Shown here: piece by piece, positions 1-56,646 of the stretch
Layout of the letters: each line of letters starts with the position of its first letter
Position numbering within the stretch: the stretch's first letter is position 1
NCBI GenBank assembly: GCA_028826165.1
Contig: JAPDFW010000129.1
Location: forward strand, 79,641 to 143,640
From: Anaeramoeba ignava BMAN
Lineage: Eukaryota > Protista > Anaeramoebae
Direction: 5' to 3'
DNA: 64,000 nucleotides
Position numbers and translations under genes: made by a program
Notes under the pieces: model-generated
The model's database searches: none
What the model saw: only the letters and a program-made list of their open reading frames with translations
What the model was told of the DNA's origin: nothing

Positions 1-1751
1 TAATTTGAATTCCATCTTTGATTTGATTTGAATAAATCCAATATTCAAATATTTGAAATGATTTATTACTTAATTCACTATAATCTGTAACTTTATTAGA
101 AGTATCATTTGTTACAGATAAAAACATTCCTCGATATAATTCACTTCTCATTATTAATATTAATTTAGGAAATTTATATTGTTTTTCTTTTCTTTCAATA
201 ATAAAATCTTTTTCATTTTCATTTTCATTTAAATAAATTCTTTTAATTGTTTCTTCAATTTTTTCATTTAAATTTATAATTTCTTTAATTTCAGAATATA
301 ATTTTGGATTTATTTTAGAATTGTTTGAATAAATCATTTCAAATATTTGATTTGATTCTTTAATTGATTTATTTGAAATAATTTCTTGAAGTTTTTCAAT
401 TTCATTTTGATTTTGATTTAATCTATATTTCAATATTAATTTATGAGCTTCAATTATTTCTCCATTTTCTGTTTTAAATGAAATATCACAAAATTCTTTT
501 CTTTCAAATAATTTTATCAAATCTTCTTCAATATTGGAAAAAGAAGAAAGAGAATAATAAAAAAATGAATTATCATATCCACAAGAAAGATGATAATTGG
601 AAATATTTTCATTAAATCTTAATTTAGGAAGTTCAATTTGAATTGGAATTAATTCGAAATTTGTATCTCCATTTCCTAAATGACCAAAATAATTATTTCC
701 AAATCCTATTAATTTTGGTTGTTAAAATCAAAGTGTGATCGAGTCCACAAGAAAAATCAAGAATATTATCATCATTTTCAAATAAAGATGATTTAATTTC
801 AGTAAATTCATAAGTATTTTCATTTTCATTTTTGCCAAGTCCATTATATCGATAATCTCCACATGAATAAAGTTTTCTTTTTGGATTTTCATTTTCATTT
901 TCATTTTCATTTTCATTTTCATTTTCATTTTCATTTTCATTTTCATTTTCATTTTCATTTTCATTTTCATTTTCATTTTCAATCAACATTATTGAATGAT
1001 AATTTCCGCATTTAATATCAATTATTTTGCCTTTTGGAATATTTTGGATTTTGGTTAATTTTTGGATTTTTGTTTCTTCTTTTCTTGATTCTCCTAATCC
1101 AAGTTGACCATGTTCATTATTTCCGCATCCAAATAATTCTTGATTTGAATTTAAAAGAAAAACAGAATTTGAAATATTTCCTGAAAATATTTTAAAAACA
1201 TTTTTCATCATTAAAATTGGTTTTTGTGTTTTTGGAAGTGTTTCAGAATCAAAACCAAGTTGACCAAATTCATTTGAACCAATTCCATAAGCATTTTGAT
1301 TTGAAGTTAATAAGTAAATTGAATTTCTTCCAGAAACAATATCTTGAATTATTCTATCATTTGTATCTTCAATTAATGATGAAATATTGATAAATTCATT
1401 TGGATTTTTTGAATTAATATTCATTCCTTTGGCAAATACATTTCCTTCTTTTGTTAAAATAGCTTCATTAAGAGCACCAACAGTTACTTTTTGAATATTT
1501 TCTTCAATTTGGATTTTTTCAGGATTTTGTTTTGAATTTTTTAAGTATTCTATTGCTTTTCCATTTTTAAAAAGGAAAATTGTTGATAAATTTCCTGTTG
1601 AAATTTGTTTAATTTGTTTTTCATTTTCATTTTCATTTTCATTTTCATTTTCATTTTCAAATTTAAATTGAATTGGTTTTGTTATTTTATTTGGTTTATT
1701 TTTGATAATTTTTGGTGAATAATTTAAACCAAAAAATAAACAATCATTCAT
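1..1751 (-). CDS. RCC1-repeat + BTB-BTB protein, copy A (3' end outside window; frameshift ~715)
   Basis: RCC1 motifs (FGCGNNEHGQLGLG, IKCGNYHSIML); the BTB module continues in another frame down to position 1; long (EN)n insert at ~885-980. Confidence 0.85.
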
Positions 1752-2109
1752 TTTTGAAAAAGAAAAAAATGAAAAAATGAAAATAAAATTTTAATTTTAA
1801 TTCTAATTTTAATTTTAATTTTGATTTTGATTTTGATTTTGATTTTGATTTTGATTTTAAATTTAATTTTAATTTTAATTTTGATTTTAATTTTAATTTT
1901 AATTTTAATTTTAATTTTGATTTTAATTTTAATTTTAATTTTAATTTTAATTTTGATTTTAATTTTAATTTTAATTTTAATTTTGATTTTAATTTTGATT
2001 TTGATTTTGATTTTGATTTTAATTGTAATTTTAATTTTAATTTTAATTTTGATTTTAATTTTAATTTTGATTTTTAATTTTAATTTTGATTTTGATATTA
2101 AATTTGATT

Positions 2110-3906
2110 TTAATTTTGATTTTGATTTTGATTATTAAATTTATTAATTAATAAATCAAATAAATTTGGATTTGTTTGATTTAATTGGAAATAATCAATT
2201 CCAATTTGAATTTCATTAATTATTTGTTTTGTAATTTGAATTTCTTCTTTAATTTTATTTGAATAAATCCAATATTCAAATATTTGAAATGATTTATTAC
2301 TTAATTCACTATAATCTGTAACTTTATTTGAAGTATCATTTGTTACAGATAAAAACATTCCTCGATATAATTCACTTCTCATTATTAATATTAATTTAGG
2401 AAATTTATATTGTTTTTCTTTTCTTTCAATTATAAAATCTTTTTCATTTTCATTTTCATTTAAATAAATTCTTTTCATTGTTTCTTCAATTTTTTCATTT
2501 GAATTTATAATTTCTTTAATTTCAGAATATAATTTTGGATTTATTATTCTGTTTGAATAAATCATTTCAAATATTTGATTTGATTCTTTAATTGATTTTT
2601 TTGAAATAATTTCTTGAAGTTTTTCAATTTCATTTTGATTTTGATTTAATCTATATTTCAATATTAATTTATGAGCTTTGATTATTTCTCCATTTTCTGT
2701 TTTAAATGAAATATTACAAAATTCTTTTCTTTCAAATAATTTTATCAAATCTTCTTCAAGATTGGAAAAAGAAAAAGAATAATAAATAAATGATCTATAA
2801 TATCCACAAGAAACATGATAATTGGAAATATCTTCATCAAATCTTAATTTAGGAATTTCAACTTGAATTGGAATTAATTGATATTGATTTGCATTTGGAA
2901 TTCCTAATTGGGCTAAATAATTATTTCCAAATCCTATAACTTTTCCTTTTATTGTTAAAATCAAAGTATGTTGATTTCCAACAGAAAAATCAAGAATATT
3001 ATCATCATTTTCAAATAAAGATGATTTAATTTCAGTAAATTCATAAGTATTTTCATATTTGCCAAGTCCATTATAATGATAATCTCCACATGAATAAAGT
3101 TTTCTTTTATTTTTTTCATTTTCATTTTCAATCAACATTATTGAATGAAATTCTCCAAATTGAATATCAATTATTTTGCCTTTTGGAATATTTTGGATTT
3201 TAGTTATTTTTTGGATTTCTGTTTCTTCTTTTCTTGATTCTCCTAATCCAAGTTGACCATATCCATTATATCCGCATACAAATAATTCTTGATTTGAATT
3301 TAAAAGAAAAACAGAGTTTGAAATATTTCCTGTAAATATTTTAGAAACATTTTTCATCATTAAAATTGGTTTTTTTGTTTTTTCAAGTGTTTTAGAATCA
3401 AAACCAAGTTGACTAAATTGATTTGAACCAATTGAATAAGCATCTTGATTTGAAGTTAATAAGTAAATTGAACTTTGACCAAAAAAAATATCTTGAATTA
3501 TTATATCATTTGTATCTTCAATTAATGATGAAATATTGATAAATTCATTTGGATTATTTGGATTAATATCTTCTCCTTTGGCAAATACATTTCCTTCTTT
3601 TGTTAAAATAGCTTCATTTCGAGAACTAACAGTTACTTTTTGAATATTTTCTTCAATTTGTATTTTTTGAGGATTTTGATTTGAATCATCTTTATTTAAA
3701 TATTCTATTGCTTTTCCATTTTTAAAAAGGAAAATTGTTGATAAATTTCCTGTTGAAATTTGTTTAATTTGTTTTTCATTTTCATTTTCATTTTTATTTT
3801 CATTTTCATTTTCAAATTTAAATTGAATTGATTTTGTTATTATATTTGGTTTATTTTTGATAATTTTTGGTGAATAATTTAAACCAAAAAATAAACAGTC
3901 ATTCAT
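2110..3906 (-). CDS. RCC1-repeat + BTB-BTB protein, copy B (intact, 598 aa)
   Basis: Seven RCC1-like blades, then FCNISFKTENGEIIKAHKLILKYR (BTB1) and KDFII..FPKLILIMRSELYRGMF (BTB2). Confidence 0.9.
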   Translation of the reverse strand: MNDCLFFGLNYSPKIIKNKPNIITKSIQFKFENENENKNENENEKQIKQISTGNLSTIFLFKNGKAIEYLNKDDSNQNPQKIQIEENIQKVTVSSRNEAILTKEGNVFAKGEDINPNNPNEFINISSLIEDTNDIIIQDIFFGQSSIYLLTSNQDAYSIGSNQFSQLGFDSKTLEKTKKPILMMKNVSKIFTGNISNSVFLLNSNQELFVCGYNGYGQLGLGESRKEETEIQKITKIQNIPKGKIIDIQFGEFHSIMLIENENEKNKRKLYSCGDYHYNGLGKYENTYEFTEIKSSLFENDDNILDFSVGNQHTLILTIKGKVIGFGNNYLAQLGIPNANQYQLIPIQVEIPKLRFDEDISNYHVSCGYYRSFIYYSFSFSNLEEDLIKLFERKEFCNISFKTENGEIIKAHKLILKYRLNQNQNEIEKLQEIISKKSIKESNQIFEMIYSNRIINPKLYSEIKEIINSNEKIEETMKRIYLNENENEKDFIIERKEKQYKFPKLILIMRSELYRGMFLSVTNDTSNKVTDYSELSNKSFQIFEYWIYSNKIKEEIQITKQIINEIQIGIDYFQLNQTNPNLFDLLINKFNNQNQNQN

Positions 3907-4058
3907 TTTTAAAAAGAAAAAAATGAAAAAATGAAAATAAAATTTTAATTTGAATTTTAATTTTAATTTTGATTTTAATTTTGATTTTGATTTTAATTTT
4001 GATTTTGATTTTAATTTTGATTTTGATTTTAATTTTAATTTTAATTTTAATTTTAATT

Positions 4059-5835
4059 TTAATTTTGATTATTAAATTTGTTAATTAATAAATCAAATAA
4101 ATTTGGATATGTTTGATTTAATTGAAAATAATCAATTCCAATTTCTATTTCATTAATAATTTCTTGTGTAATTTGAATTTCTTCTTTAATTTGATTTGAA
4201 TAAATCCAATATTCTAATATTTGAAATGATTTATTACTTAATTCACTATAATCTGTAACTTTATTTGAAGTATCATTTGTTACAGATAAAAACATTCCTC
4301 GATATAATTCACTTCTCATTATTAATATTAATTTAGGAAATTTATATTGTTTTTCTTTTCTTTCAATAATAAAATCTTTTTCATTTTCATTTTCATTTAA
4401 ATAAATTCTTTTCATTGTTTCTTCAATTTTTTCATTAGAATTTATAATTTCTTTAATTTCAGAATATAATTTTGGATTTGTTATTCTGTTTGAATAAATC
4501 ATTTCAAATATTTGATTTGATTCTTTAATTGATTTTTTTGAAATAATTTCTTGAAGTTTTTCAATTTGATTTTGATTTTGATTTAATCTATATTTCAATA
4601 TTAATTTATGAGCTTTGATTATTTCTCCATTTTCGGTTTTAAATGAAATATCACAAAATTCTTTTCTTTCAAATAATTTTATCAAATCTTCTTCAAGATT
4701 GGAAAAAGAAGAAAGAAGAGGAGAATAATAAAGAAATGAATTTTGAAATCCACAAGAAATATGATAATTAGAAATATCTTCATTAAATCTTAATTTAGGA
4801 AGTTCAATTTGAATTGGAATTGATTGATCTTCTGTATTTCCATTTCCTAATCCACCATATGAATTTCTTCCAAATCCTATCAATTTATTTTTTGTTGTTA
4901 AAACCAAATTATGATCAAGTCCACAAAAAATTTCAAGAATATTATCATCATTTTCAAATAAAGGTGATTTGATTTCAGTAAATTCATAAGTATTTTCATT
5001 TTTGTTAAATCCATTAGATCTATAATCTCCACATGAATAAAGTTTTCTTTTTTCATTTTCATTTTCAATCAACATTATTGAATGATAATCTCCACATTTA
5101 ATATCAATTATTTTACCTTTTGGAATATTTTGTATTTTGGTTAATTTATGGATTTTTGTTTCTTCTTTTCTTGATTCTCCTAATCCAAGTTGACCATATC
5201 CATTATTTCCGCATCCAAATAATTCTTGATTTGAATTTAAAAGAAAAACATGAGTTGAAATATTTCCTGTAAATATTTTAGAAACATTTTTCATCATTAA
5301 AATTGGTTTTTCTGTTTTTTTAAGTGTTATAGAATCAAAACCAAGTTGACCATCTTGATTTAAACCAATTGAATAAGCATTTTGATTTGAAGTTAATAAA
5401 TAAATTGAAAAGTATCCAGAAACAATATCTTGAATTATTCTATCATTTGTATCTTCAATTAATGATGAAATATTGATAAATTCATTTGGATTATCTGGAT
5501 TAATATCTCTTCCTTTTGCAAATACATTTCCTTCTATTGTTAAAATAGCTTGATTTTGAAAACCAGCAGTTACTTTTTGAATATTTTCTTCAATTTGTAT
5601 TTTTGAGATTTTGATTTGAAGGATTATTTAAATATTGAATTGCTTTTCCATTTTAAAAAGGAAAAATTGATAAATTTCCTGTTGAAATTTGTTTAATTTG
5701 TTTTTCATTTTCATTTTCATTTTTATTTTCATTTTCATTTTCAAATTTAAATTGAATTGATTTTGTTATTATATTTGGTTTATTTTTGATAATTTTTGGT
5801 GAATAATTTAAACCAAAAAATAAACAATCATTCAT
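4059..5835 (-). CDS. RCC1-BTB copy C (indels at ~5600-5670; pseudogene or sequencing error)
   Basis: ORFs 5653-5835 and 4059-5297 plus intervening homologous sequence; N-terminus identical to copy B. Confidence 0.8.
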
Positions 5836-6049
5836 TTTTGAAAAAGAAAAAAATGAAAAAATGAAAATAAAAAATTTTAATTTTAATTTTAATTTTAATT
5901 TTAATTTTAATTTTAATTTTAATTTTAATTTTAATTTTGATTTTTATAAATGAATTTTTAATTTTGATTTTAATTTGATTTTGATTTTAATTTTAATTTT
6001 AATTTTAAATTTTTTTGATTTTTAATTTTAATTTTAATTTTAATTTTAA

Positions 6050-7814
6050 TTTTAATTTGATTAAATTTGTTAATTTTAATTCTAATTTCAGTTTTTGATT
6101 TGGATATTTTAATTTTCAATTTCTGATTTTCATTAATAATTTCTTCTTTAATTTGAATTCCATCTTTTTGATTTGATTTGAATAAATCCAATATTCAAAT
6201 ATTTGAAATGATTTATTACTTAATTCACTATAATCTGTAACTTTATTTGAAGTATCATTTGTTACAGATAAAAACATTCCTCGATATAATTCACTTCTCA
6301 TTATTAATATTAATTTTGGGAAATTTATATTGTTTTTCTTTTCTTTCAATAATAAAATCTTTTTCATTTTCATTTTCATTTAAATAAATTCTTTTCATTG
6401 TTTCTTCAATTTTTTCATTTGAATTTATAATTTCTTTAATTTCAGAATATAATTTTGGATTTGTTATTCTGTTTGAATAAATCATTTCAAATATTTGATT
6501 TGATTCTTTAATTGATTTTTTTGAAATAATTTCTTGAAGTTTTTCAATTTGATTTTGATTTTGATTTAATCTATATTTCAATATTAATTTATGAGCTTCA
6601 ATTATTTCTCCATTTTCGGTTTTAAATGAAATATTACAAAATTCTTTTCTTCTAAATAGTTTTATCAAATCTTCTTCAAGATTAGAAAATTCTGCATAAT
6701 AAAGAAAAGATTTGTAATATGCACAAGAAAGATGATAATTGTAAGGATCAAAACATAATTCAGGAAGTTCAATTTGAATTGGAATTGATTGATTATTTGT
6801 ATCTCCAGTTCCTAATTGACCATACTGATTATTCCCAAAACCTATCAATTTTGAATTGGAAGTTAAAATCAAAGTATGAACATATCCACAAGAAAAATCA
6901 AGAATATTATCATTTTCAAATAAAGATGATTTGATTTCAGTAAATTCATAAGTATTTTCATCTTCTTTGCCAAGTCCATTATACTGATAAGCGCCAGTTG
7001 AATAAAGTTTTCTTTTATTTTCTTCATTTTCAATTTCAATCAACATTATTGAATGATAAAATCCACATTGAATATCAATTATTTTGCCTTTTGGAATATT
7101 TTGGATTTTGGTTAATTTTTGGATTGATTGATCTTTTCTTGATTCTCCTAATCCAAGTTGACCAAATTCATTCCATCCACAACAAAATAATTCTTGATTT
7201 GAATTTAAAAGAAAAACATGATTTGAATTGGTTCCTGAAAATATTTTAGAAACATTTTTCATCATTAAAATTGGTTTATGAGTTGTTTTCACAGAACTAA
7301 AATCAAAACCAAGTTGACCAAAAAGATTAGAACCAAATCCATAAGCATTTTGATTTGAAGTTAATAAGTAAATCGCATTAGCACCAGAAACAATATCTTG
7401 AATTATTCTATCATTTGGATCTTCAATTAATGATGAAAGTTGATACCATATATCAGGACCATCAGAAATATCTGAATCATTAGCAAAAGCAAAATCTTGT
7501 TCTTCGTTTTTTGCAAGAACTAATCCTTCTTTTGTAAGAACTATAACTTGATTTGAACCAACAGATACTTTTTGAATATTTTGCATATAAAGTTGATTTG
7601 TTTCATTGGAAAATGATAAATATTCATTTGCTTTTCCATTTTTAAAAAGTAAAATTATTGTAAAAACACCTGATAAAATTTGTTTAATTTCATTTTCATT
7701 TTCATTTTCATTTTCATTTTCAAATTTAAATTGAATTGGTTTTGTTATTTTATGTTCATAATTTTTTAAAAGAAGTTGAAAATTATTTTGACCAAAAAAT
7801 AAACAATAATTCAT
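6050..7814 (-). CDS. RCC1-BTB copy D (divergent blades 1-2; frameshifted/garbled C-terminus)
   Basis: ORF 6291-7814 plus BTB2 continuing in ORF 6116-6379. Confidence 0.8.
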
Positions 7815-15670: not shown

Positions 15671-15815
15671 TAAAATAAAAAATCAAAATTAAAATTAAAA
15701 TTAAAATTAAAATTAAAAAAATAAAATTTAAAATCAAAATTAAAATTAAAATTAAAACTAAAATTAAAAAAATTAAATTAAAATTAAATTCAAAAAAGGA
15801 AATGTTTAATTTGTA

Positions 15816-15923
15816 AAAGAAATTATTAATGAAATTAAAATTGGAATTGATTATTTTCAATTAAATCAAACAAATCCAAATTTATTTGATTTATTAATTA
15901 ACAAATTTAATAATCAAAATTAA
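15816..15923 (+). pseudogene. Orphan duplicate of the RCC1-BTB C-terminal tail
   Basis: Encodes KEIINEIKIGIDYFQLNQTNPNLFDLLINKFNNQN* with no upstream gene body. Confidence 0.8.
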
Positions 15924-17777: not shown

Positions 17778-17948
17778 AATTAAAATTAAAATCAAAATTA
17801 AAATTAAAATTAAAATTAAAATTAAAATTAAAATTAAAATTAAAATTAAAATCAAAATTAAAATTAAAATACAAATTAAAATCAAAATTAAAATTAAAAT
17901 TAAAATTAAAATTTCATTTTTCATTTTTCATTTTTCATTTTTTTTGAA

Positions 17949-35286: not shown

Positions 35287-35327
<41 letters not shown>

Positions 35328-45020: not shown

Positions 45021-45270
45021 TTTATTTAAATGAAAAAGAAAAGAAAAACAATATAAATTTCCAAAATTAATATTAATAATGAGAAGTGAATTATATCGAG
45101 GAATGTTTTTATCTGTAACAAATGATAAAACTTCAAATAAAGTTACAGATTATAGTGAATTAAGTAATAAATCATTCCAAATATTTGAATATTGGATTTA
45201 TTCAAATCAAATTAAAGAAGAAATTCAAATTACACAAGAAATCATTAATGAAATTCAAATTGGAATTAAA
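45021..45270 (+). pseudogene. Orphan RCC1-BTB C-terminal (BTB2) fragment
   Basis: Starts at YLNE..KEKQYKFPK and ends at IQIGI; no upstream gene body. Confidence 0.85.
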
Positions 45271-45392: not shown

Positions 45393-47177
45393 ATGAATGA
45401 AATTATATTTTTTGGTAAAAATGAATATCCAAAACTTATCAAAAATGAACCAAATAAAATAACAAAACCAATTCAATTTAAATTTGAAAATGAAAATGAA
45501 AATGAAAATGAAAATGAAAACGAAAATGAAAAACAAATTAAACAAATTTCATCAAGTTTCTTTTCAACAATTTTCCTTTTTAAAAATGGAAAAGCAATAG
45601 AATATTTAAGTGAAAATGATTTAAATCAAAATCCTGAAAAAATACAAATTGAAGAAAATATTCAAAAAGTAGCTGTTGGTGTTCAAAATGAAGCTATTTT
45701 AACAAAAGAAGGAAATGTATTTGCCAAAGGAATGAAGATGAATCCAAAAAATCCAAATAAATTTATCAATATTTCATCATTAATTGAAGATCCAAATGAT
45801 AGAATAATTCAAGATATTGTTTCTTCTGAAAGTTTGATTTACTTATTAACTTCAAATCAAAATGCTTATGGAATTGGTGGTAATCAATATGGTCAACTTG
45901 GTTTTGATTCTAAAACACTTCCAAAAACAGAAAAACCAATTTTAATGATGAAAAATGTTTCTAAAATATTTTCAGGAAATGATTCAGGACATGCTTTTCT
46001 TTTAAATTCAAATCAAGAATTATTTGGATGTGGCGATAATAGTTCTAGTCAACTTGGATTAGGAGAATCAAGAAAAGAAGAAATAAAAATCCAAAAATTA
46101 ACCAAAATTCAAAATATTCCAAAAGGCAAAATAATTGATATTAAATGTGGAAGTATTCATTCAGTAATGTTGATTGAAAATGAAAATGAAGATGAAAATG
46201 AAAATCCAAAAAGAAAACTTTATTCATGTGGAAATTACCAATATAACGGACTTGATGTAGATAATTACGAATTTATTGAAATCAAATCATTTTTATTTGA
46301 AAATGATAATATTCTTGATTTTTCTGTTGGAAATACTCATACTTTAATTTTAACATCAAAAGGGAATCTAATAGGATTTGGATATAATTATTATTGCCAA
46401 TTAGGAAATAGAAATACAAAAAGTCAATTAAAACCAATTCAAATTGAACTTCCTGAATTAAGATTTAAAGAAGATATTTCCAATTATCATGTTTCTTGTG
46501 GATATAATAAATCATTTCTTTATTATTCTCCTTCTTCTTTTTCCAATCTTGAAGAAGATTTGATAAAATTATTTGAAAGAAAAGAATTTTGTGATATTTC
46601 ATTTAAAACCAAAAATGGAGAAATAATTGAAGCTCATAAATTAATATTGAAATATAGATTAAATCAAAATGAAAATGAAATTGAAAAGCTTCAAAGAAAT
46701 TATTTCAAAAATCAATTAAAGAATCAAATCAAATATTTGAAATGATTTATTCAAATAGAATTATAAATCCAAAATATTCTGAAATTAAAGAAATTATAAA
46801 TTCAAATGAAAAAATTGAAGAAACAATGAAAAGAATTTATTTAAATGAAAATGAAAAAGATTTTATTATTGAAAGAAAAGAAAAACAATATAAATTTCCA
46901 AAATTAATATTAATAATGAGAAGTGAATTATATCGAGGAATGTTTTTATCTGTAACAAATGATACTTCAAATAAAGTTACAGATTATAGTGAATTAAGTA
47001 ATAAATCATTTCAAATATTTGAATATTGGATTTATTCAAATCAAATTAAAGATGAAATTCAAATTACACAAGAAATCATTAATGAAATTCAAATTGGAAT
47101 TGATTATTTTCAATTAAATGAAGCAAATCCAAATTTATTTGATTTATTAATTAACAAAATTTAATAATCAAAATTAA
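45393..47177 (+). CDS. RCC1-BTB copy H (frameshifts ~46695 and ~47158)
   Basis: ORFs 45393-46745 and 46742-47164. Confidence 0.85.
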
Positions 47178-47271: not shown

Positions 47272-49057
47272 ATGAATGATTGTTTATTTTTTGGTTCAAA
47301 TAATTATCCAAAACTTTTCAAAAATGAACCAGAAATAATAACAAAACCTATTCAAATTAAATTTGAAAATGAAAATGAAAATGAAAATGAAAATGAAAAT
47401 GAAAAACAAATTAAACAAATTTCATCAAGTTTATTTGCAACAATTTTCCTTTTTAAAAATGGAAAAGCAATAGAATATTTAAATCAAAGAAATTCAAAAC
47501 AAAATCCTGAAAAAATCCAAATTGAAGAAAATATTCAAAAAGTAACTGTTGGTGTTCGAAATGAAGCTATTTTAACAAAGAAGGAAATGTATTTGCCAAA
47601 GGAGAATATATTAATTCAAAAAATCCAAATAAATTTATCAATATTTCATCATTAATTGAAGATAAAAATGATAGAATAATTCAAGATATTGTTTCTTCAG
47701 AAAGTTCAATTTACTTATTAACTTCAAATCAAAATGTTTATGGAATTGGTTCAAATGATTATTGTCAACTTGGTTTTGATTCTAAAACACTTCCAAAAAC
47801 AGAAAAACCAATTTTAATGATGAAAAATGTTTCTAAAATATTTTCAGGAAATGATTCGGGACATGCTTTTCTTTTAAATTCAAATCAAGAATTATTTGGA
47901 TGTGGCGATAATAGCTCTAGTCAACTTGGATTAGGAGAATCAAGAAAGAAGAAATAAAAATCCCTAAATTAACCAAAATTCAAAATATTCCAAAAGGCAA
48001 AATAATTGATATTAAATGTGGAAGTATTCATTCAATAATGTTGATTGAAAATGAAGATGAAAATGAAAATCCAAAAAGAAAACTTTATTCATGTGGAGGT
48101 TATCTATATAATGGACTTGGCAAATATGAAAATACTTATGAATTTACTGAAATCAAATTATCTTTATTTGAAAATGATAATATTCTTGATTTTTCTGTTG
48201 GAAATACTCATACTTTAATTTTAACTCAAACGGAAATTAATTGGATTTGGATATAATCAACAAGGCCAATTAGGAACTGGAACTACTTCTTTAAATCAAT
48301 TAAAACCAATTCAAATTGAACTTCCTAAATTAAGATTTAATGAAGATATTTCCAATTATCATGTTTCTTGTGGATTTGATAATTCATTTCTTTATTATTC
48401 TCCTCTTTCTTTTTCCAATCTTGAAGAAGATTTGATAAAATTATTTGAAAGAAATGAATTTTGTGATATTTCATTTAAAACCAAAAATGGAGAAATAATT
48501 GAAGCTCATAAATTAATATTGAAATATAGATTAAATCAAAATCAAAATCAAATTGAAAAACTTCAAGAAATTATTTCAAATAAATCAATTAAAGAATCAA
48601 ATCAAATATTTGAAATGATTTATTCAAACAGAATAATAAATCCAAAATTATATTTTGAAATTAAAGAAATTATAAATTTAAATGAAAAAATTGAAGAAAC
48701 AATGAAAGAATTTATTTAAATGAAAATGAAAATGAAAAAGATTTTATTATTGAAAGAAAAGAAAAACAATATAAATTTCCAAAATTAATATTAATAATGA
48801 GAAGTGAATTATATCGAGGAATGTTTTTATCTGTAACAAATGATACTTCAAATAAAGTTACAGATTATAGTGAATTAAGTAATAAATCATTCCAAATATT
48901 TGAATATTGGATTTATTCAAATCAAATTAAAGATGAAATTCAAATTACACAAGAAATCATTAATGAAATTCAAATTGGAATTGATTATTTTCAATTAAAT
49001 CAAACAAATCCAAATTTATTTGATTTATTAATTAACAAATTTAATAATCAAAATTAA
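47272..49057 (+). CDS. RCC1-BTB copy I (several frameshifts)
   Basis: Four ORF pieces collinear with the family consensus. Confidence 0.8.
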
Positions 49058-49415
49058 AATTAAAATCAAAATCAAAATTAAAATTTAAATTAAAATTAAA
49101 ATTAAAATTAAAATTAAAATTAAAATTAAAATTAAAATTAAAATTAAAATTAAAATTAAAATTAAAAATTAAAATTAAAATTAAAATAAAAATTAAAATT
49201 AAAATTAAAATTAAAATTAAAATCAAAATTAAAATTAAAATCAAAATTAAATTAAAATTAAAATTAAAATCAAAATTAAAATTAAAATTAAAATTAAAAT
49301 TAAAATTAAAATCAAAATTAAAATTAAAATTAAAATTAAAATCAAAATTAAAATTAAAAATTAAAAAAATTAAAATTAAAATTAAAAATCATTTTTCATT
49401 TTTTTCTTTTCAAAA

Positions 49416-51191
49416 ATGAATGAAATTTTATATTTTGGTGAAAATCAAAATCCAAAACTTATCAAAAATGAACCAAAAGAAAAAATAATAAAACCAATTC
49501 AATTTAAATTTGAAATTGAAAATGAAAATGAAAATGAAAATGAAAAACAAATTAAACAAATTTCAATAGGTTATTTTGGAACAATTTTCCTTTTTGAAAA
49601 TGGAAAAGCAATAGAATACTTACAAAGTTCAAGACAAAATCCTGAAAAAATACAAATTGAAGAAAATATTCAAAAAGTATCTGTTGGTTTTCAAAATGAA
49701 GCTATTTTAACTTCAGAAGGAAATGTATTTGCCAAAGGAAGTAATATTAATCCAAATAATCCAAGAGAATTTATCAATATTTCATCATTAATTGAAGATA
49801 AAAATGATAGAATAATTCAAGATGTTGTTTCTGCAGAATATTCAATTTATTTATTAACTTCAAATCAAAATGCTTATGGAATTGGTTCAAATCAAGATGG
49901 TCAACTTGGCTCTCAATCAATCCAAAAAACAGAAAAACCAATTTTAATGATGAAAAATGTTTCTAAAATATTTTCAGGAAATTCTTCACTTCATGTTTTT
50001 CTTTTAAATTCAAATCAAGAATTATTTGGATGTGGTGATAACAAATATGGCCAACTTGGATTGGGGAAACCGACAACAGAAACAAAAAACTATAAATTAA
50101 CCAAAATCCAAAATATTCCAAAAGGTAAAATAATTGATATTCAATCTGGATTTGCTCATTCAGTAATGTTGATTGAACAAGAAGATGAAAATGAAAATCC
50201 AAAAAGAAAACTTTATTCAACTGGAAGATTTTTTTTTAATGGTCTTGGCCAAGAAAATAGAGACATCTATGAATTTACTGAAATCAAATCATCTTTATTT
50301 GAAAATGATGATAATATTCTTGAAATTTCTATTGGATGTTTTCATAATTTGATTTTAACTTCCAAACGGAAATTAATTGGATTTGGAAGTAATTCATATG
50401 GTGAATTAGGAAATCAAGACGCAAATAATCAATTGATTCCAATTCAAGTTGAACTTCCTAAATTAAGATTTAATGAAAATATTTCCAATTATCATATTTC
50501 TTGTGGATATTCCAAAACATTTCTTTATTATTCTCCTTTTCTTTCTCCTTTTTCCAATCTTGAAGAAGATTTGATAAAATTATTTAGAAGAAAAGAATTT
50601 TGTAATATTTCATTTAAAACAGAAAATGGAGAAATAATAGAAGCTCATAAATTAATATTGAAATATAGATTAAATCAAAATCAAAATCAAAATGAAATTG
50701 AAAAACTTCAAGAAATTATTTCAAAAAAATCAATCAAAGAATCAAATCAAATATTTGAAATGATTTATTCAAACAGAATAATAAATCCAAAATTATATTC
50801 AGAAATTAAAGAAATTATAAATTTAAATGAAAAAATTGAAGAAACAATGAAAAGAATTTATTTAAATGAAAATGAAAAAGATTTTATAATTGAAAGAAAA
50901 GAAAAACAATATAAATTTCCCAAATTAATATTAATAATGAGAAGTGAATTATATCGAGGAATGTTTTTATCTGTAACAGAAGATACTTCTAATAAAGTTA
51001 CAGATTATAGTGAATTAAGTAATAAATCATTTCAAATATTTGAATATTGGATTTATTCAAATCAAATTAAAGATGAAATTCAAATTACAAAAGAAATCAT
51101 TAATGAATTAGAAATTGGAATTGATTATTTTCAATTAAATCAAACAAATCCAAATTTATTTGATTTATTAATTAGGAAATTTAAAAATTAA
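49416..51191 (+). CDS. RCC1-BTB copy J (intact, 591 aa)
   Basis: Complete ORF with the family architecture. Confidence 0.9.
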   Translation: MNEILYFGENQNPKLIKNEPKEKIIKPIQFKFEIENENENENEKQIKQISIGYFGTIFLFENGKAIEYLQSSRQNPEKIQIEENIQKVSVGFQNEAILTSEGNVFAKGSNINPNNPREFINISSLIEDKNDRIIQDVVSAEYSIYLLTSNQNAYGIGSNQDGQLGSQSIQKTEKPILMMKNVSKIFSGNSSLHVFLLNSNQELFGCGDNKYGQLGLGKPTTETKNYKLTKIQNIPKGKIIDIQSGFAHSVMLIEQEDENENPKRKLYSTGRFFFNGLGQENRDIYEFTEIKSSLFENDDNILEISIGCFHNLILTSKRKLIGFGSNSYGELGNQDANNQLIPIQVELPKLRFNENISNYHISCGYSKTFLYYSPFLSPFSNLEEDLIKLFRRKEFCNISFKTENGEIIEAHKLILKYRLNQNQNQNEIEKLQEIISKKSIKESNQIFEMIYSNRIINPKLYSEIKEIINLNEKIEETMKRIYLNENEKDFIIERKEKQYKFPKLILIMRSELYRGMFLSVTEDTSNKVTDYSELSNKSFQIFEYWIYSNQIKDEIQITKEIINELEIGIDYFQLNQTNPNLFDLLIRKFKN

Positions 51192-52150
51192 AACCAAAAT
51201 TAAAATCAAAATTAAAATCAAAATTAAAATCAAAATTAAAATTAAAATTAAAATTAAAATCAAAATTAAAATTAAAATCAAAATTAAAAATAAAATTAAA
51301 ATCAAAATCAAAATCAAAATTAAAATTAAAATTAAAATTAAAATTAAAATCAAAATTTAAAATTAAAATCAAATTAAAATTAAAATTAAAATTAAAATTA
51401 AAAATTAAAAATTAAAATTAAAATTAAAATTAAAATTAAAATTAAAATTAAAATTTAAAATAAAAATTAAAATTAAAATTAAAATTAAAATTAAAATTAA
51501 AATTAAAATTAAAATTTAAATTTAAAATTAAAATTAAAATTAAAACCAAAATCAAATAAAAATCAAAATTAAAATTAAAATCAAAATTAAAATCAAAATC
51601 AAAATTAAAATTAAAATTAAAATTAAAATCAAAAATTAAAATCAAAATTAAAATTAAATTAAAATTAAAATTAAAATTGAAATTAAAATCAAAATTAAAA
51701 TTAAAATTAAAATTAAAATTAAAAATTAAAATTAAAATTAAAATTAAAATTAAAATTAAAAATTAAAATTAAAATTAAAATTAAAATTAAAATTAAAAAT
51801 TAAAATTAAAATTAAAATTAAAATTAAAATTAAAATTAAAATTAAAAATTAAAATTAAAATTAAAATTAAAATTAAAATTAAAATTAAAATTAAAATTAA
51901 ATTAAAAATTAAAATTAAAATTAAAATTAAAATTAAAATTAAAATTAAAATTAAAATTAATATTAAAATTAAAATTAAAATTAAAATTAAATTTAAAATT
52001 AAATTTAAAATAAAATTAAAATTAAAAATCAAAATTAAAATTAAAATTAAAATTAAAATCAAAATTAAAATTTAAAATAAAATCAAAATTAAAACTAAAA
52101 TCAAAATTAAAATTAAAATTAAAATTAAAATCAAAATTAAAATTAAAAAA
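51190..52150. repeat. (AAAATT)n/(AAAATC)n intergenic tract
   Basis: Visible; similar tracts separate most array members. Confidence 0.95.
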
Positions 52151-52198
52151 AGTTCCAAAATTTTTTTTCATTTTTTTTCATTTTTTTTCTTTTCAAAA

Positions 52199-53948
52199 AT
52201 GAATGATTGCTTATTTTTTGGTTTCAATAAAAATCCAAAACTTATCAAAAATGAACCAGAAACAATAATAACAAAACCCATTCAATTTAAATTTGAAAAT
52301 GAAAATGAAAAACAAATTAAACAAATTTCAACAAGTTTATTTTCAACAATTTTCCTTTTTAAAAATGGAAAAGCAATAGAATATTTAACTCAAGAAGATT
52401 CAAAACAAAATCCTTCAAAAATACAAATTGAAGAAAATATTCAAAAAGTAACTGTTGGTTATGAAAATGAAGCTGTTTTAACTTCAGAAGGGAATGTATT
52501 TGCCAAAGGAAAAGATATTAATTTAAAAGAATTTATCAATATTTCATCATTAATTGAAGATCCAAATGATAGAATAATTCAAGATGTTGTTTCTGGATAT
52601 AATTCAATTTACTTATTAACTTCAAACCAAAATGCTTATGGAATTGGTTCAAATTATTTTGGTCAACTTGGTTCTCAATCAATCCAAAAAACAGAAAAAC
52701 CAATTTTAATGATGAAAAATGTTTCTAAAATATTTTCAGGAAATGATTCAGGACACGTTTTTCTTTTAAATTCAAATCAAGAATTATTTGTATGCGGCTA
52801 TAATCAATTTGGTCAAGTTGGATTAGGAGAATCAAGAAAAGAAGAAACAAAAATCCCTAAATTAGCCAAAATCCAAAATATTCCAAAAGGAAAAATAATT
52901 GATATTCAATCTGGATTTTATCATTCAGTAATGTTGATTGAACAAGAAGATGAAAACCAAAATCCAAAAAGAAAGCTTTATTCATGTGGATATAATCTAT
53001 ATAATGGTCTTGGCAAATATGAAGATACTTATGAATTTACTGAAATCAAATCATCTTTATTTGAAAATGATGATAATATTATTGATTTTTCTGTTAGAAG
53101 TGCTCATACTTTGATTTTAACTTCCAATTCAAAGATGATAGGATTTGGACATAATCAACAAGGCCAATTAGGAACTGGAGATACAGAAAATCAATTAATT
53201 CCAATTCAAATTGAACTTCCTAAATTAAGATTTGATGAAAATATTTTCAATTATCATATTTCTTGTGGATATGATAGATCATTTCTTTATTATTCTCCTC
53301 CTTCTTTTTCCAATCTTGAAGAAGATTTGATAAAATTATTTAGAAGAAAAGAATTTTGCAATATTTCATTTAAAACAGAAAATGGAGAAATAATTGAAGC
53401 TCATAAATTAATATTGAAATATAGATTAAATCAAAATCAAAATCAAATTGAAAAACTTCAAGAAATTATTTCAAACAAATCAATTAAAGAATCAAATCAA
53501 ATATTTGAAATGATTTATTCAAACAGAATAATAAATCCAAAATTATATTTTGAAATTAAAGAAATTATAAATTCAAATGAAAAAATTGAAGAAACAATGA
53601 AAAGAATTTATTTAAATGAAAATGAAAAAGATTTTATAATTGAAAGAAAAGAAAAGAAATATAAATTTCCCAAATTAATATTAATAATGAGAAGTGAATT
53701 ATATCGAGGAATGTTTTTATCTGTAACAGAAGATAAATCTAATAAAGTTACAGATTATAGTGAATTAAGTAATAAATCATTCCAAATATTAGAATATTGG
53801 ATTTATTCAAATCAAATCAAAGAAGAAATTCAAATTACACAAGAAATCATTGATGAAATTCAAAATTGGAATTGATTATTTTCAATTAAATCAAACAAAT
53901 CCAAATTTAATTGATTTATTAATTAACAAATTTAATAATCAAAATTAA
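52199..53948 (+). CDS. RCC1-BTB copy K (1-nt indel ~53863)
   Basis: ORF 52199-53875; the tail continues out of frame. Confidence 0.87.
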
Positions 53949-54830
53949 AAATTAAAATCAAAAATTAAAATTAAAATAAAAATTAAAATTAAAATTAAAA
54001 TTAAAATTAAAATTAAAATCAAAATTAAAATTAAAATTAAAATTAAAATTAAAATTAAAATTAAAATCCAAATTAAAATTAAAATTTAAATTAAAATTAA
54101 AATAAAATTAAAATTAAAATTAAAATTTAAATTAAAATCAAAATCAAAATCAAATTTAAAATTAAAATTAAAATTAAAATCAAAAATTAAAATTAAAATT
54201 AAAATAAAAATTAAAATAAAATTAAACTAAAATTAAAATCAAAATTAAAATTAAATTAAAATTAAAATCAAAATTAAAATTAAAATTAAAATTAAAAATC
54301 AAAATCAAAATTAAAATCAAAATTAAAATTAAAATCAAATTAAAATTAAAATTAAAATTAAAATTAAAATTAAAATTAAATTTAAAATTAAAATTAAAAT
54401 CAAAATTAAAATTAAAATTAAAATTAAAATTAAAATTAAAATTAAAATTAAAATTTAAAATTAAAATTAAAATCAAAAATTAAAATTAAAATTAAAATTA
54501 AAAATTAAAATTAAAATTAAAATTAAAATTTAAAATTAAAATTAAAATTAAAAATTAAAATTAAAATTAAAATTAAAATTAAAATTAAAAAATTAAATTA
54601 AAATCAAATCAAAATTAAAATTAAAATCAAAATTAAAATTAAAATTAAAATTAAAATTAAAATTAAAATTAAAATTAAATTAAAATTCAAAATTAAAATT
54701 AAAATTAAAATTAAAATTAAAATTAAAAATCAAAATTAAAATTAAAATTAAAATTAAAATCAAAATTAAAATTAAAATTAAAATTAAAATTAAAATTAAA
54801 ATTAAAATTAAAATTAAAATTAAAATAAAA
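53945..54830. repeat. (AAAATT)n intergenic tract
   Basis: Visible. Confidence 0.95.
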
Positions 54831-54875
54831 TTCCAAAAATCATTTTTCATTTTTTTCATTTTTTTTCTTTTAAAA

Positions 54876-56646
54876 ATGAATGAAATTATATTTTTTGGTT
54901 TAAATGAAAATCCAAAACTTATCAAAAATGAACCAATTAAAATAACAAAACCAATTCAATTTAAATTTGAAAATGAAAATGAAAATGAAAATGAAAAACA
55001 AATTAAACAAATTTCTTCATGTGAATTTTCAACAATTTTCCTTTTTAAAAATGGAAAAGCAATAGAATATTTAAATGAAAATAATTCAAAACAAAATCCT
55101 GAAAAAATCCAAATTGAAGAAAATATTCAAAAAGTAACTGTTGGTTTTTCTAATGAAGCTATTTTAACAATAGAAGGAAATGTATTTGCTAAAGGAAAAG
55201 ATATTAATCCAAAAAATCCAAATGAATTTATCAATATTTCATCATTAATTGAAGATACAAAATGATAGAATAATTCAAGATATTGTTTCTGGATACCAGT
55301 CAATTTACTTATTAACTTCAAATCAAAATGTTTATGGAATTGGCTATAATCAATTTAGTCAACTTGGTTTTGATTCTGACTTACTTCTAAAAACAGAAAA
55401 ACCAATTTTAATGATGAAAAATGTTTCTAAAATATTTTCAGGAAATTATTCATTTTCTGTTTTTCTTTTAAATTCAAATCAAGAATTATTTGGATGCGGA
55501 TCTAATTATAATGGCCAAATTGGATTAGGAGAATCAAGAAAAGAAGAAACAAAAATCCAAAAATTAACCAAAATCCAAAATATTCCAAAAGGTAAAATAA
55601 TTGATATTCAATGTGGAAGTAGTCATTCAATAATGTTGATTGAAAATGAAAATCAAAATCAAAATCCAAAAAGAAAACTTTATTCATGTGGAAATTGGCA
55701 ATATAATGGACTTGATGTAGATACTTATGAATTTACTGAAATCAAATCATCTTTATTTAAAAATGAAAATGATAATATTCTTGATTTTTCTGTTGGAGAT
55801 TCTCATACTTTGATTTTAACTTCCAATTCGAAATTAATAGGATTTGGTTTAAATAATTTTAGTCAATTAGGAACTGGAGATACAAATAATCAATCAATTC
55901 CAATTCAAATTGAACTTCCTAAATTAAGATTTAATGAAAATATTTCAATTATCATATTTCTTGTGAATTTAAAAAATCATTTCTTTATTATTCTCCTCCT
56001 TCTTTTTCCAATCTTGAAGAAGATTTGATAAAATTATTTAGAAGAAAAGAATTTTGTGATATTTCATTTAAAACAGAAAATGGAGAAATGATTGAAGCTC
56101 ATAAATTAATATTGAAATATAGATTAAATCAAAATCAAAATCAAATTGAAAAACTTAAAGAAATTATTTCAAATAAATCAATTAAAGAATCAAATCAAAT
56201 ATTTGAAATGATTTATTCAAACAGAATTATAAATCCAAAATTATATTCTGAAATTAAAGAAATTATAAATTCAAATGAAAAAATTGAAGAAACAATGAAA
56301 AGAATTTATTTAAATGAAAATGAAAATGAAAAAGATTTTATTATTGAAAGAAAAGAAAAAACAATATAAATTTCCTAAATTAATATTAATAATGAGAAGT
56401 GAATTATATCGAGGAATGTTTTTATCTGTAACAGAAGATAAATCAAATAAAGTTACAGATTATAGTGAATTAAGTAATAAATCATTTCAAATATTTGAAT
56501 ATTGGATTTATTCAAATCAAATTAAAGATGAAATTCAAATTACAAAAGAAATAATTGAAGAAATTAAAATTGGAATTGATTATTTTCAATTAAATCAAAC
56601 AAATCCAAATTTATTTGATTTATTAATTAACAAATTTAATAATTAA
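54876..56646 (+). CDS. RCC1-BTB copy L (three single-base frameshifts)
   Basis: ORFs 54876-55265, 55249-56028, 56025-56369, 56314-56646. Confidence 0.83.

Follow-up and report, generated by a model that had tools for sequence, protein, structure and literature searches.

What kind of protein is encoded by a cluster of paralogous genes that are close to identical over most of their length and differ from each other at a few fixed positions of a β-propeller? A locus of this kind lies in the nuclear DNA of Anaeramoeba ignava BMAN, in a stretch of 64,000 nucleotides of contig JAPDFW010000129.1 (assembly GCA_028826165.1, positions 79,641 to 143,640) that is referred to here as the window. With somewhat better than even confidence, we read these genes as encoding single-chain recognition modules, in which a diversified propeller face is joined to a constant BTB-BTB module, and the locus as one tandem cluster of a large A. 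ignava family.

Gene cluster and gene family

A tblastn search with the intact copy c10 (49416-51191) as the query locates 12 near-full-length copies, between positions 1 and 56650, and three fragments (Table 1). The copies are 84–94% identical to each other at the DNA level, and their reading frames are contiguous and intron-free. The 12 intronless paralogues reported in a first-pass annotation of this DNA are therefore real, although that annotation did not mention that only two or three of the 12 are intact. Only c2 and c10 are fully intact and nine copies are disrupted, with frameshifts or a stop in c1, c3, c4, c5, c8, c9, c11 and c12; in c6, the insertion leads to readthrough into the microsatellite as an IK repeat, the homologous part ending at about position 17754. 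Several of the lesions are 1-nt indels in A-runs and might be errors of the Nanopore/Pilon assembly; the indels of 2 and 5 nt do not belong to this type, and neither do the stop codon or the missing start. Nearly all of the 29 copies examined, those on other contigs included, are preceded by the same upstream element, and most copies are followed by an (AAAATT/C)n microsatellite, the first units of which contain the stop codon and an NNQN tail.

Table 1. Coordinates of the propeller/BTB-BTB copies, fragments and associated elements in the window (residue numbering, here and throughout, is that of c10)
Feature	Position	Strand	Description
Copy c1	1..1751	-	5-nt deletion around codon 315; C-terminal end beyond window edge
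Copy c2	2110..3906	-	Intact 598-aa ORF, RCC1-like propeller and BTB-BTB
Copy c3	4059..5835	-	In-frame stop at codon 61; 2-nt deletion
Copy c4	6170..7814	-	Most divergent copy (84-87% nt); BTB part with three small insertions; C-terminus lost
Copy c5	13910..15656	+	1-nt (G) insertion close to BTB2 end
Fragment	15813..15896	+	Duplicated C-terminal piece (residues 558-585)
Copy c6	15964..18024	+	Full length; 2-nt insertion 5 nt upstream of usual stop
Copy c7	20003..21814	+	Open frame throughout; start lost (GAA AAT GAA versus ATG AAT GAA)
Fragment, BTB2 region	45043..45267	+	Residues 496-569
Copy c8	45393..47164	+	+1 and -2 nt indels at BTB1/BTB2 junction, giving two ORFs
Copy c9	47272..49060	+	Four deletions of 1-2 nt each
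Copy c10	49416..51191	+	Intact 591-aa ORF; propeller 1-380, BTB1 ~381-485, BTB2 ~486-591
Copy c11	52199..53950	+	1-nt insertion close to BTB2 end
Copy c12	54876..56650	+	Three 1-nt indels, each in a homopolymer run; may be assembly errors
Fragment, BTB2 region	61067..61365	+	Residues 488-591
Upstream element, example	49385..49415	+	TCATTTTT-CATTTTTTT-CTTTTCAAAA immediately 5' of ATG
(AAAATT/C)n microsatellite, example	51184..52148	+	160 units
(AAAATT/C)n microsatellite, further example	49037..49387
(AAAATT/C)n microsatellite, further example	53928..54832

Genome-wide, at least 542 close paralogues were found (proteins at E ≤ 1e-200), all named matches being from A. ignava; they are spread over dozens of contigs in tandem arrays and account for more than 3% of the genes annotated in the species, and some of them carry the label 'BTK-binding protein-related' in the genome annotation. 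Outside A. ignava, the closest relative is a 1590-aa multi-RLD and BTB protein of A. flamelloides with 33% identity. The family is species-specific to A. ignava and undergoes turnover by birth and death of genes. The protein collection holds no transcriptome-derived sequences of this subfamily; for more distant subfamilies it holds some.

Domain architecture

Pfam recognises an RCC1-like domain (PF25390, PF00415, PF13540) and two BTB stretches (PF00651) in the window copies, corresponding to a seven-bladed RCC1-like propeller with two BTB folds C-terminal to it. The AlphaFold model (pLDDT 89) matches the RLDs of RCC1, RPGR and HERC in Foldseek (TM 0.73–0.81), so that profiles, model and structural search agree on the architecture first proposed from the reading frames. 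The C-terminal model (pLDDT 92) finds its best match in the tethered Miz1-BCL6 POZ dimers 4u2m and 4u2n (TMq 0.65), followed by single BTBs including those of SPOP-Cul3 and KBTBD2/4. The two BTB folds are accordingly predicted to form an intramolecular pseudo-dimer, which would stop hundreds of near-identical BTB domains from mixing as dimers.

RCC1 repeats followed by BTB are also found in the animal proteins RCBTB1/2 and IBTK, the latter having two BTB domains and acting as a Cul3 substrate receptor (PMC4447969). The likeness is one of domain order: these are single-copy animal genes that lack a hypervariable face, and IBTK is much longer and has ankyrin repeats. In the A. ignava family, the φ-x-E region of the BTB reads V-T-[E/N]-D, the Cul3-contact motif is not clearly conserved, and no 3-box is present after BTB2. 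The A. ignava genome contains eight cullin-family genes, assigned at family level. Cul3 binding by the BTB module is plausible.

Variation on one face of the propeller

Among 114 paralogues from outside the window, entropy is concentrated at 40 sites, 28 of which fall within the 34 loop positions set by two motifs, G-x-x-[H/N/S/T] and G-x-N-x-x-G-Q-L-G, each present once per blade (hypergeometric p = 3e-27). This bears out the first-pass annotation, which had placed the variation at fixed positions of every blade and whose motif examples are all found in the window translations. Mean pairwise identity is 0.285 in the loops, 0.856 in the remaining propeller and 0.930 in the near-invariant BTB-BTB part, and about 35–45 residues are diversified in each propeller. 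Each loop occurs in 46–84 states, uncorrelated between loops, and the loop combination is unique in all 114 paralogues.

In the model, the hypervariable positions occupy the strand 1–strand 2 (A–B) hairpin turn and the start of the strand 3–strand 4 (C–D) loop of every blade; both loops share one side in a four-stranded meander, and the variation lies on one face. An alignment to the UVR8 interface (W198/R200/Y201, W233/R234, W250/Y253, W285/R286, W302 and W337/R338) also supports the location on a single face that had been suggested. By homology, this is the face that RCC1 uses for Ran and UVR8 for its partners. These proteins share the seven-bladed fold, and the Trp/Arg pairs of GWRHT and the Trp/Tyr positions of GWxxYG in UVR8 correspond to the hypervariable residues of the A. 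ignava family, which coincide with the Ran-contact Asp/His residues of RCC1 as well. RCC1 and UVR8, however, conserve the contact residues for one partner and have no BTB attached, whereas in the A. ignava family these are the least conserved positions.

The use of this face by RCC1 could also mean that the proteins are endogenous regulators and not a non-self repertoire, each paralogue pairing with one member of the expanded protein families of the amoeba itself, such as a membrane-traffic small GTPase, as exchange factor or degradation adaptor. Expanded membrane-traffic regulators are reported in the A. ignava genome paper, and one annotated model is a family member fused to a Ras domain, although two gene models may have been merged in this case. 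At three of the six loci fetched, a small-GTPase gene is found less than 10 kb from an array, which is a small, raw count. Conserved GTPase partners would not need so many loop states and unique surfaces, and the varying positions are exactly those of the catalytic and Ran-contact residues of RCC1; we regard this explanation as very unlikely.

The loops have a composition like that of antibody CDRs (Tyr 22%, Ser 14%), as had been noted; Tyr, Ser, Asp and Trp abound in them, and there is little Ile, Leu, Lys or Val. Relative to an AT-biased neutral expectation, Tyr is 2.3-fold, Asp 3.1-fold and Trp 4.5-fold enriched, and Ile, Leu, Lys and Val are present at 0.26–0.32 of the expected level. No stop codon occurs in the 1334 loop codons of 29 copies, broken ones included. 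A near-constant scaffold with a scrambled face looks like a large repertoire of recognition proteins.

Substitution rates and the origin of loop diversity

Loop codons evolve 5–10 times faster than the silent sites of the scaffold: loop dN is 0.77 against a scaffold dS of 0.13, and loop codon positions 1 and 2 differ at 0.49 and 0.47, compared with 0.05–0.09 at scaffold 4-fold sites. A site test with a constant synonymous rate (constant alpha) gives 2dlnL = 1238, with 52 sites, and in close pairs the loop-codon differences are 92 nonsynonymous to 6 synonymous. Loop codons themselves, however, also have a synonymous rate that is raised about 5-fold, and local dN/dS at the loops is therefore about 1; when this rate is left free, alpha is 4–6 and beta 4–5 (LRT 1.2–1.8, not significant), and a site-by-site analysis with varying silent rates flags few of the most variable sites. 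The first-pass annotation had named a loop dN/dS of 1 or less as evidence against its reading; on this point the answer is split, the loops exceeding that value against the silent rate of the scaffold but not locally. By comparison, omega is 0.18 in the BTB part, indicative of purifying selection, and about 0.5 in the scaffold, likewise when only intact copies are used.

Since local dN/dS is about 1, classical selection on point mutations is not the whole story, and loop diversity also owes something to short-patch conversion, clustered mutation or homogenisation of the scaffold. The loops might even be neutral, drifting unconstrained in a possibly largely decaying family, while frequent short-tract conversion among hundreds of paralogues homogenises the scaffold, silent sites included, and mismatch-dense loops escape; no selection for diversity would be required. 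Consistent with this are the local omega, the broken window copies, the missing transcripts and a silent-rate excess that decays within two codons of the loops, together with scaffold 4-fold sites that are mostly invariant (29 copies from seven loci), RCC1 and BTB trees that are discordant, star-like and weakly supported, and a compatibility of scaffold sites that is lost beyond about 30 nt. We nevertheless consider neutrality unlikely. In each gene, conversion tracts would need to leave out 2–4 codons at fourteen places; the BTB part is clearly under purifying selection, and loop codons are free of stops even in broken copies. Furthermore, the composition is far from the AT-biased neutral expectation: Ile, Leu and Lys, which mutation reaches most easily, are depleted 3–4 times, and Tyr, Asp and Trp are enriched. 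An omega of about 1 despite rejection of roughly half of the mutational input implies that accepted loop changes fix faster than neutral ones.

Several features of the silent change would suit a directed process, in which the loop codons are hot spots of mutation or undergo programmed short-patch conversion from other family members, and selection only filters the outcome. Synonymous change is raised not only at loop codons but also at the silent position of the invariant Gly codon that directly precedes them, and simulation excludes saturation or skewed composition as the source of this excess. In close pairs, about half of the loop codons that differ do so by 2–3 nucleotides, and c11 has a six-codon cassette in common with a non-sister copy on another contig. 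The same pattern would, however, result from clustered mutations that become fixed along with selected ones; loop change is not confined to one base, loop states are uncorrelated and so give no sign of long donor tracts, and neither an enzyme nor a template element is evident, a reverse-transcriptase ORF being absent among the window ORFs scanned and no template repeat having been noticed. Directed diversification is, in our view, quite unlikely.

A diversified recognition module and its relation to known systems

In the recognition-module reading that we favour, three processes would together generate the diversity: fast duplication within tandem arrays, selection for new, binding-competent loop residues, and something that raises silent change exactly at the loops, the candidates being ectopic conversion of short patches, clustered mutations that hitchhike with selected ones, and scaffold homogenisation. 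Loop residues diversified in this way, and kept rich in Tyr, Ser, Asn, Asp, Phe and Trp, would therefore give every paralogue a surface of its own. Each variable face may bind a different ligand, and the constant BTB module would dock all of the proteins on the same partner, for which a cullin-3-type ubiquitin ligase is the most plausible candidate; bound ligands would then be ubiquitinated. The targets may be microbial, viral, symbiont, prey or self, and the family might have an immune role.

Thomas, in 2006, and Gingerich, in 2007, reportedly described lineage-specific, positively selected families of cullin-ligase receptors, namely the MATH-BTB and F-box proteins of nematodes and the MATH-BTB proteins of grasses. 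These families reportedly resemble the present one in having hundreds of lineage-specific paralogues in tandem arrays, many pseudogenes, and a conserved ligase-docking domain combined with a substrate-binding domain of variable surface; recognition of foreign proteins has reportedly been proposed as their role. In contrast, the variable domain of the A. ignava family is an RCC1-like propeller rather than MATH, FTH or FBA, its BTB is doubled as a predicted intramolecular pseudo-dimer, its scaffold is far more uniform (silent diversity 0.05–0.09), the silent rate is raised at variable codons, and A. ignava itself is an anaerobic, free-living amoeba and a relative of the metamonads.

A second parallel is offered by fungal NLRs with highly conserved WD40, ANK or TPR repeats, such as HET-E/D/R and the nwd family in Podospora, for which concerted evolution and diversifying selection have been proposed together (PMC1805685, PMC2873952). 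Their propellers likewise have a near-invariant framework with a few hypervariable positions per blade on the interaction face. In the fungal proteins, however, the conservation is between repeats inside one gene, which are shuffled, whereas in A. ignava it is between paralogues, the blades within one protein being only about 15% identical to each other; the A. ignava proteins are without NACHT or NB-ARC, and their output module is BTB-BTB.

Family size and genomic organization

Anaeramoeba ignava encodes a very large, species-specific, tandem-arrayed family of proteins in which a propeller and double-BTB scaffold is constant and one propeller face is individual to each member. A tblastn search with the intact copy c10 (591 aa, the reference for residue numbers) recovered 12 near-full-length copies in the window, numbered c1 to c12 by position, together with shorter fragments of the family; no spliced model was required, which bears out the twelve intronless paralogues of the first-pass annotation. 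Protein matches assign the window to the nuclear genome of strain BMAN (assembly GCA_028826165.1). The G+C content of the window is 12–23%, and its copies are 84–94% identical at the DNA level. Intact reading frames remain only in c2 and c10. In c6, 2 nt are inserted five bases ahead of the usual stop and the frame is read on through the adjoining microsatellite; c7 is missing the ATG, c3 has both a stop codon and a deletion of 2 nt, c1 lacks 5 nt, and c4, c5, c8, c9, c11 and c12 carry indels of 1–2 nt. Because the assembly is built from Nanopore R9 reads polished with Racon, Nanopolish and Pilon, the single-base indels in A runs (all three of those in c12 and some in c8 and c9) may be assembly errors; the remaining breaks are not of this type. 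Broken copies were read through with N at every break for alignment only, the frameshifts being placed against c10.

Positions of the family copies, associated elements and neighbouring genes in the window and in the array-bearing loci from other contigs (L001–L006)
Feature	Location	Strand	Remarks
RCC1-BTB copy group	window 1-7814	-	4 near-full-length copies (tblastn)
RCC1-BTB copy group	window 13910-21814	+	3 near-full-length copies (tblastn)
RCC1-BTB copy group	window 45393-56650	+	5 near-full-length copies (tblastn)
Reference copy c10	window 49416-51191	+	tblastn query
Family fragments	window 15813-15896, 45043-45267, 61067-61365		tblastn with c10
Upstream element (example)	window 49385-49415		
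(AAAATT/C)n microsatellites	window 45251-45364, 49037-49387, 51184-52148, 53928-54832		
BTB-BACK-TLDc gene	window 11629-13096	-	
BTB-BACK-TLDc gene	window 58222-59975	+	
BTB-BACK-TLDc gene	L002 4629-6050		
BTB-BACK-TLDc genes	L004 11913-13535, 20934-21773		
P-loop protein	window 17949-19985	+	678 aa, between c6 and c7
Microbial-type PARG (PF10021)	window 9748-11456	-	two adjacent ORFs
Tandem repeat	window 56711-57500		144-bp unit, 5.5 copies, 93% matches
Six-base repeat runs	window 38421-41953		
Transporter-like gene pair	window 39850-41361 and 62828-63942		40660-41361 compared with 62828-63325
Small Ras/Arf-type GTPase genes	L001 18306-20043; L005 4776-5342; L006 12280-13572		

At least 542 proteins, encoded on dozens of contigs, match c10 at E ≤ 1e-200, and every named match among these close paralogues is from A. 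ignava. The six loci L001–L006 contain tandem arrays of 2–7 copies each; as they were located through intact proteins, they bias the frequency of pseudogenes outside the window low. Arrays, broken copies and fragments together constitute a lineage-specific expansion with gene birth and death. In an exhaustive HMMER search of 1.8 billion cluster representatives, full-length relatives at 34–61% identity were likewise found in A. ignava only, some of them with armadillo N-termini and some represented in the EukProt transcriptome. Among the matches to the close family, the shorter ones are gene fragments from the genome annotation, and a search of cluster members for transcripts of the close family returned none, these fragments being genome annotations. 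The nearest protein of the sister species A. flamelloides is 1590 aa long, comprises several RCC1-like domains and one C-terminal BTB, and is 33% identical over the shared part. The metagenome contigs scanned contained no relatives, and no account of a hypervariable RCC1-BTB family emerged from literature searches. The genome paper (PMC11550330) treats other expansions, and neither RCC1 nor BTB appears in its text or in the supplementary files examined.

Domain architecture

The N-terminal part of the protein is recognized by the RCC1 profiles PF00415 (75–81 bits, cut-off 21.7) and PF13540 (63–72 bits, cut-off 22), and PF25390 scores 130–136 bits, under its cut-off of 150. In the AlphaFold model (pLDDT 89.1, pTM 0.77), 28 strands fall into seven groups corresponding to seven four-stranded blades. 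Foldseek matches this model to the solved RCC1-like domains 1a12, 1i2m, 4jhn, 4o2w and 7q40 at E = 2e-24 with target TM scores of 0.73–0.81, and the propeller resembles RCC1, RPGR, HERC1/2 and UVR8 at TM 0.7–0.8. Profile and fold evidence thus both identify a seven-bladed RCC1-like propeller.

The BTB-BTB module noticed in the sequence is likewise apparent in two stretches matched by PF00651 (38.5–38.9 bits, cut-off 20.5) and in the BTB fold of the model. The second half (BTB2) has the complete core B1-B2-A1-A2-B3-A3-A4-A5, and BTB1 is modelled without strand B3. For a separate model of the C-terminal 215 residues (pLDDT 91.6), the best structural matches were the engineered single-chain Miz1-BCL6 and Miz1-NAC1 POZ dimers (TMq 0.60–0.66), followed at lower rank by the single BTBs of BCL6, KBTBD2/4 in CRL3 complexes, SPOP-Cul3 and BACH1. 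Since the best matches are POZ dimers in a single chain, the two BTB halves are predicted to pack against each other as an intramolecular pseudo-dimer.

Variable residues on one propeller face

The near-invariant scaffold with variable residues at fixed positions of each blade, first seen in the window, recurs in 114 paralogues encoded elsewhere in the genome. Most of the protein has an entropy of approximately zero in this set. More than 2 bits are reached at 40 sites, 28 of which lie in two motif-defined positions, each present one time in every blade (p = 3e-27). The first, L1, comprises the two or three residues following the Gly in G-x-x-[H/N/S/T], and the second, L2, the x positions in G-x-N-x-x-G-Q-L-G. 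Mean pairwise identity is 0.285 in the loops, 0.856 in the remaining propeller and 0.930 in the BTB-BTB part. Each loop exists in 46–84 states in this sample, apart from two less variable loops with 17 and 28, the combination of loops is unique in all 114 proteins, and the states of different loops are uncorrelated.

In the AlphaFold model, L1 is the tight turn between strands 1 and 2 of a blade and L2 the start of the long loop between strands 3 and 4; because both connections of an antiparallel meander share a side, strand topology and homology place all 14 loops on one predicted face of the propeller. Sequence alignment to UVR8 agrees with this placement, which had been proposed from the sequence alone: L1 aligns with the Trp-Arg of the GWRHT motifs (W233/R234, W285/R286, W337/R338) and L2 with W198/R200/Y201, W250/Y253 and W302/F305, residues that make up the dimer and partner-binding face of UVR8. 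The same positions presumably carry the Ran-contacting Asp and His of RCC1. We rejected an identity with RCC1 proper, the Ran exchange factor, as by this assumed mapping its contact and catalytic positions on the GxxH and GxNxxG loops are those that are hypervariable (identity 0.285).

The composition of the loops was compared with an AT-biased neutral expectation over 3861 loop residues, and the abundance of Y, F, W, S and N suspected from the window was upheld. Tyr (21.7%) and Ser (13.8%) exceed the expectation 2.3-fold and 2.2-fold, Asp (6.4%) 3.1-fold and Trp 4.5-fold; Asn (11.5%) and Phe (10.0%) are frequent and not enriched over neutral; Ile, Leu, Lys, Val and Pro stand at 0.26–0.32 times and Met at 0.03 times the expected value. 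About 10% of random AT-rich codons would be expected to be stops, and no stop occurs in the loop codons of the 29 copies analysed as DNA, broken ones included. The loops show signs of a selective filter for binding-type residues.

Rates of change in loops and scaffold

These 29 copies, drawn from more than 540 genes, comprise the 12 of the window and 17 intact ones from L001–L006. Nei-Gojobori estimates among the window copies give dN 0.77 and dS 0.32 at the hypervariable sites, 0.069 and 0.127 in the scaffold, and 0.029 and 0.078 in the BTB part. Codon likelihoods were computed with a custom MG94xF3x4 implementation on IQ-TREE trees, using a grid of synonymous (alpha) and nonsynonymous (beta) rates; this code, which is distinct from PAML/HyPhy, was checked by simulation. 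Under a constant alpha of 1, a model that admits beta > 1 improves the fit by 2dlnL = 1238, about 10% of sites fall at omega 5–8, and 52 sites reach P > 0.95, essentially all L1 and L2 sites among them. With alpha free, the 34 loop sites pooled give alpha 5 (4–6) and beta 4 (4–5), a difference that is not significant, and alpha is 0.8 and beta 0.4 in the remaining propeller. Restricting the analysis to the 20 intact copies yields the same numbers, with an omega of 0.18 in the BTB part. A FUBAR-like site-by-site run with free synonymous rates flagged 21 sites. As alpha is likewise high at the most variable sites, few of those were flagged, and sites were therefore pooled by class.

The local rise of silent change at the variable codons is an unexpected result. 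It is sharply confined, alpha being 1.7 at one codon from a loop, 1.0 at two and 0.6–0.8 farther away. When data were simulated on the tree used for the estimates under alpha 0.8 and beta 3–8, with or without the observed amino-acid preferences, alpha was recovered at 0.8–1.0, so the rise is not an artefact of saturation or composition. Model-free measures point the same way. Third-position transition differences amount to 0.072 in loops versus 0.030 in the scaffold (0.063 versus 0.0145 in eight close pairs), and the four-fold site of the invariant Gly preceding the loops has a diversity of 0.16 versus 0.05–0.09 elsewhere (p = 0.013); most four-fold sites of the scaffold are invariant across all 29 copies. 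In five close pairs, 28–59% of loop codons differ versus 9–14% elsewhere; about half of the differing loop codons of close pairs have two or three base changes, and their tally is 92 nonsynonymous versus 6 synonymous.

One face of the propeller thus evolves 5–10 times faster than silent sites of the scaffold. The expectation that dN/dS would exceed 1 at the loops holds when the reference is scaffold silent sites or a constant synonymous rate, and the ratio is about 1 when the loop synonymous rate is free; as silent change is raised at the variable codons themselves, the test gives no clean yes. This leaves room for homogenization of the scaffold, short-patch conversion, and clustered or directed mutation, acting beside selection on point mutations or replacing it.

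Recombination and the origin of diversity

Trees of the copies are star-like with weak support, and those of the propeller and BTB halves disagree. Approximately 52% of informative scaffold site pairs are incompatible, compatibility being better only at less than 30 nt (p < 0.001 below 10 nt, p = 0.007 below 30 nt), and the PHI test with a wide window is marginal (p = 0.046). Loop-to-loop identity correlations are about 0.01–0.03 at all distances and are uninformative on recombination. A six-codon cassette around one loop is common to c11 and a copy on another contig that is not its sister in the propeller tree. The compatibility, tree and cassette data fit very short conversion patches, and equally clustered and recurrent mutation on a star phylogeny.

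Diversity-generating retroelements combine a reverse transcriptase with a template repeat and introduce adenine-specific changes into a variable repeat. We rejected such an element here, as the window ORFs scanned include no reverse transcriptase match and all three codon positions and all bases vary. A dedicated process that diversifies the loops in place of ordinary mutation and selection, either programmed short-patch cassette copying between members or local hypermutation at the 14 loop sites of each gene, seems to us improbable; if real, it would give a protist a means of generating diversity of a propeller-based receptor in the germline, or even within a clonal culture. The local rise in silent change lends itself to telling apart the effects of selection, conversion and clustered mutation in the evolution of receptor families.

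Possible function as ligase adaptors

In the proposed mechanism, the variable face would bind diverse ligands, the BTB module would recruit a cullin ligase, and the system would recognise foreign or variable targets. It is plausible, if unproven, that the intramolecular BTB pseudo-dimer stops mixed dimers from forming among hundreds of near-identical BTBs. The phi-x-E region (A2-B3, alpha3-beta4 loop) reads S-V-T-[E/N]-D-x-S-N-K-V, with Val520 and Asp523 at least 90% conserved and Glu522 interchanging with Asn, and V-x-D in more distant subfamilies; a Cul3 contact motif, V-T-[E/N]-D, is only loosely recognisable here. No 3-box or BACK helices follow the BTB, the chain ending with helix A5 of BTB2 (residues 581–590 of 591). 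The 3-box is not universal among Cul3 adaptors, so that its absence weakens the adaptor assignment without excluding it. IBTK is a Cul3 substrate receptor (PMC4447969), and Supplementary Data 4 of the genome paper gives 8 PANTHER cullin-family genes in A. ignava (PMC11550330), namely M0811_11916, 01398, 01478, 05510, 05511, 05640, 06756 and 08438.

More than 3% of the genes of A. ignava belong to the family. This amoeba feeds on bacteria by phagocytosis, and a dedicated membrane system houses its sulfate-reducing symbionts. Should the members of the family serve as ligase adaptors, they would form a candidate system for separating food, symbiont, virus and self, and a natural library of RCC1-propeller binders. 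Intracellular recognition repertoires with a fixed scaffold and a variable face occur in animals, plants, fungi and nematodes; to our knowledge, almost nothing comparable has been described in free-living protists. Fungal NLRs with repeats of high internal conservation have near-identical repeats within a gene and a NACHT or NB-ARC domain, whereas blade-to-blade identity in c10 is 0.15 (maximum 0.29) and the protein is without an NTPase domain; we rejected that model on both counts. For the fungal propeller repertoire, concerted evolution and diversifying selection have been described (PMC1805685, PMC2873952).

Flanking elements and neighbouring genes

An upstream element, TCATTTTT(T)CATTTTTTTCTTTT(C)AAAA, lies immediately 5' of the ATG in nearly all of the 29 copies, including those of L001–L006, and also precedes copies that come first in their array. 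The repeated TCA motifs of this element resemble the initiator element of parabasalid promoters. Most copies are followed by (AAAATT/C)n microsatellites of up to 160 units, the first of which supply the stop codon and a C-terminal NNQN tail; slippage therefore changes the tail of the protein, as in c6, which continues as IKIK. These TTAAAA-rich microsatellites could favour unequal crossing-over or insertion of new copies. The flanks were rejected as a neutral yardstick, the upstream one being a short conserved promoter and the downstream one a microsatellite.

The other genes of the window are ordinary eukaryotic ones, encoding an ABC transporter, a short-chain dehydrogenase, a protein kinase and a TPR protein, together with a microbial-type poly(ADP-ribose) glycohydrolase (PARG), two BTB-BACK-TLDc proteins and a P-loop protein. 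BTB-BACK-TLDc genes adjoin RCC1-BTB arrays at several loci, and the flank beyond c12 is homologous to that beyond the final copy of the L002 array; this second family therefore seems to have been co-amplified with the first. The P-loop gene overlaps the read-through tail of c6, and its product has weak matches to DAP3 and to the 'novel STAND NTPase 5' profile. The two ORFs of the PARG gene are separated by an intron or a frameshift, and a bacterial origin is possible, the genome being reported as rich in lateral transfer. Three of the six loci from other contigs have small Ras/Arf-type GTPase genes within 10 kb of the array, and in one annotated protein (P0086) a family member is fused to a Ras domain, possibly through a merged gene model. 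The 144-bp tandem repeat directly follows the last copy of the array in the window, and the long six-base repeat runs have open frames reading (IL)n, (NF)n and (DF)n. Segmental duplication outside the RCC1-BTB arrays is also indicated by a transporter-like gene pair that is present twice.
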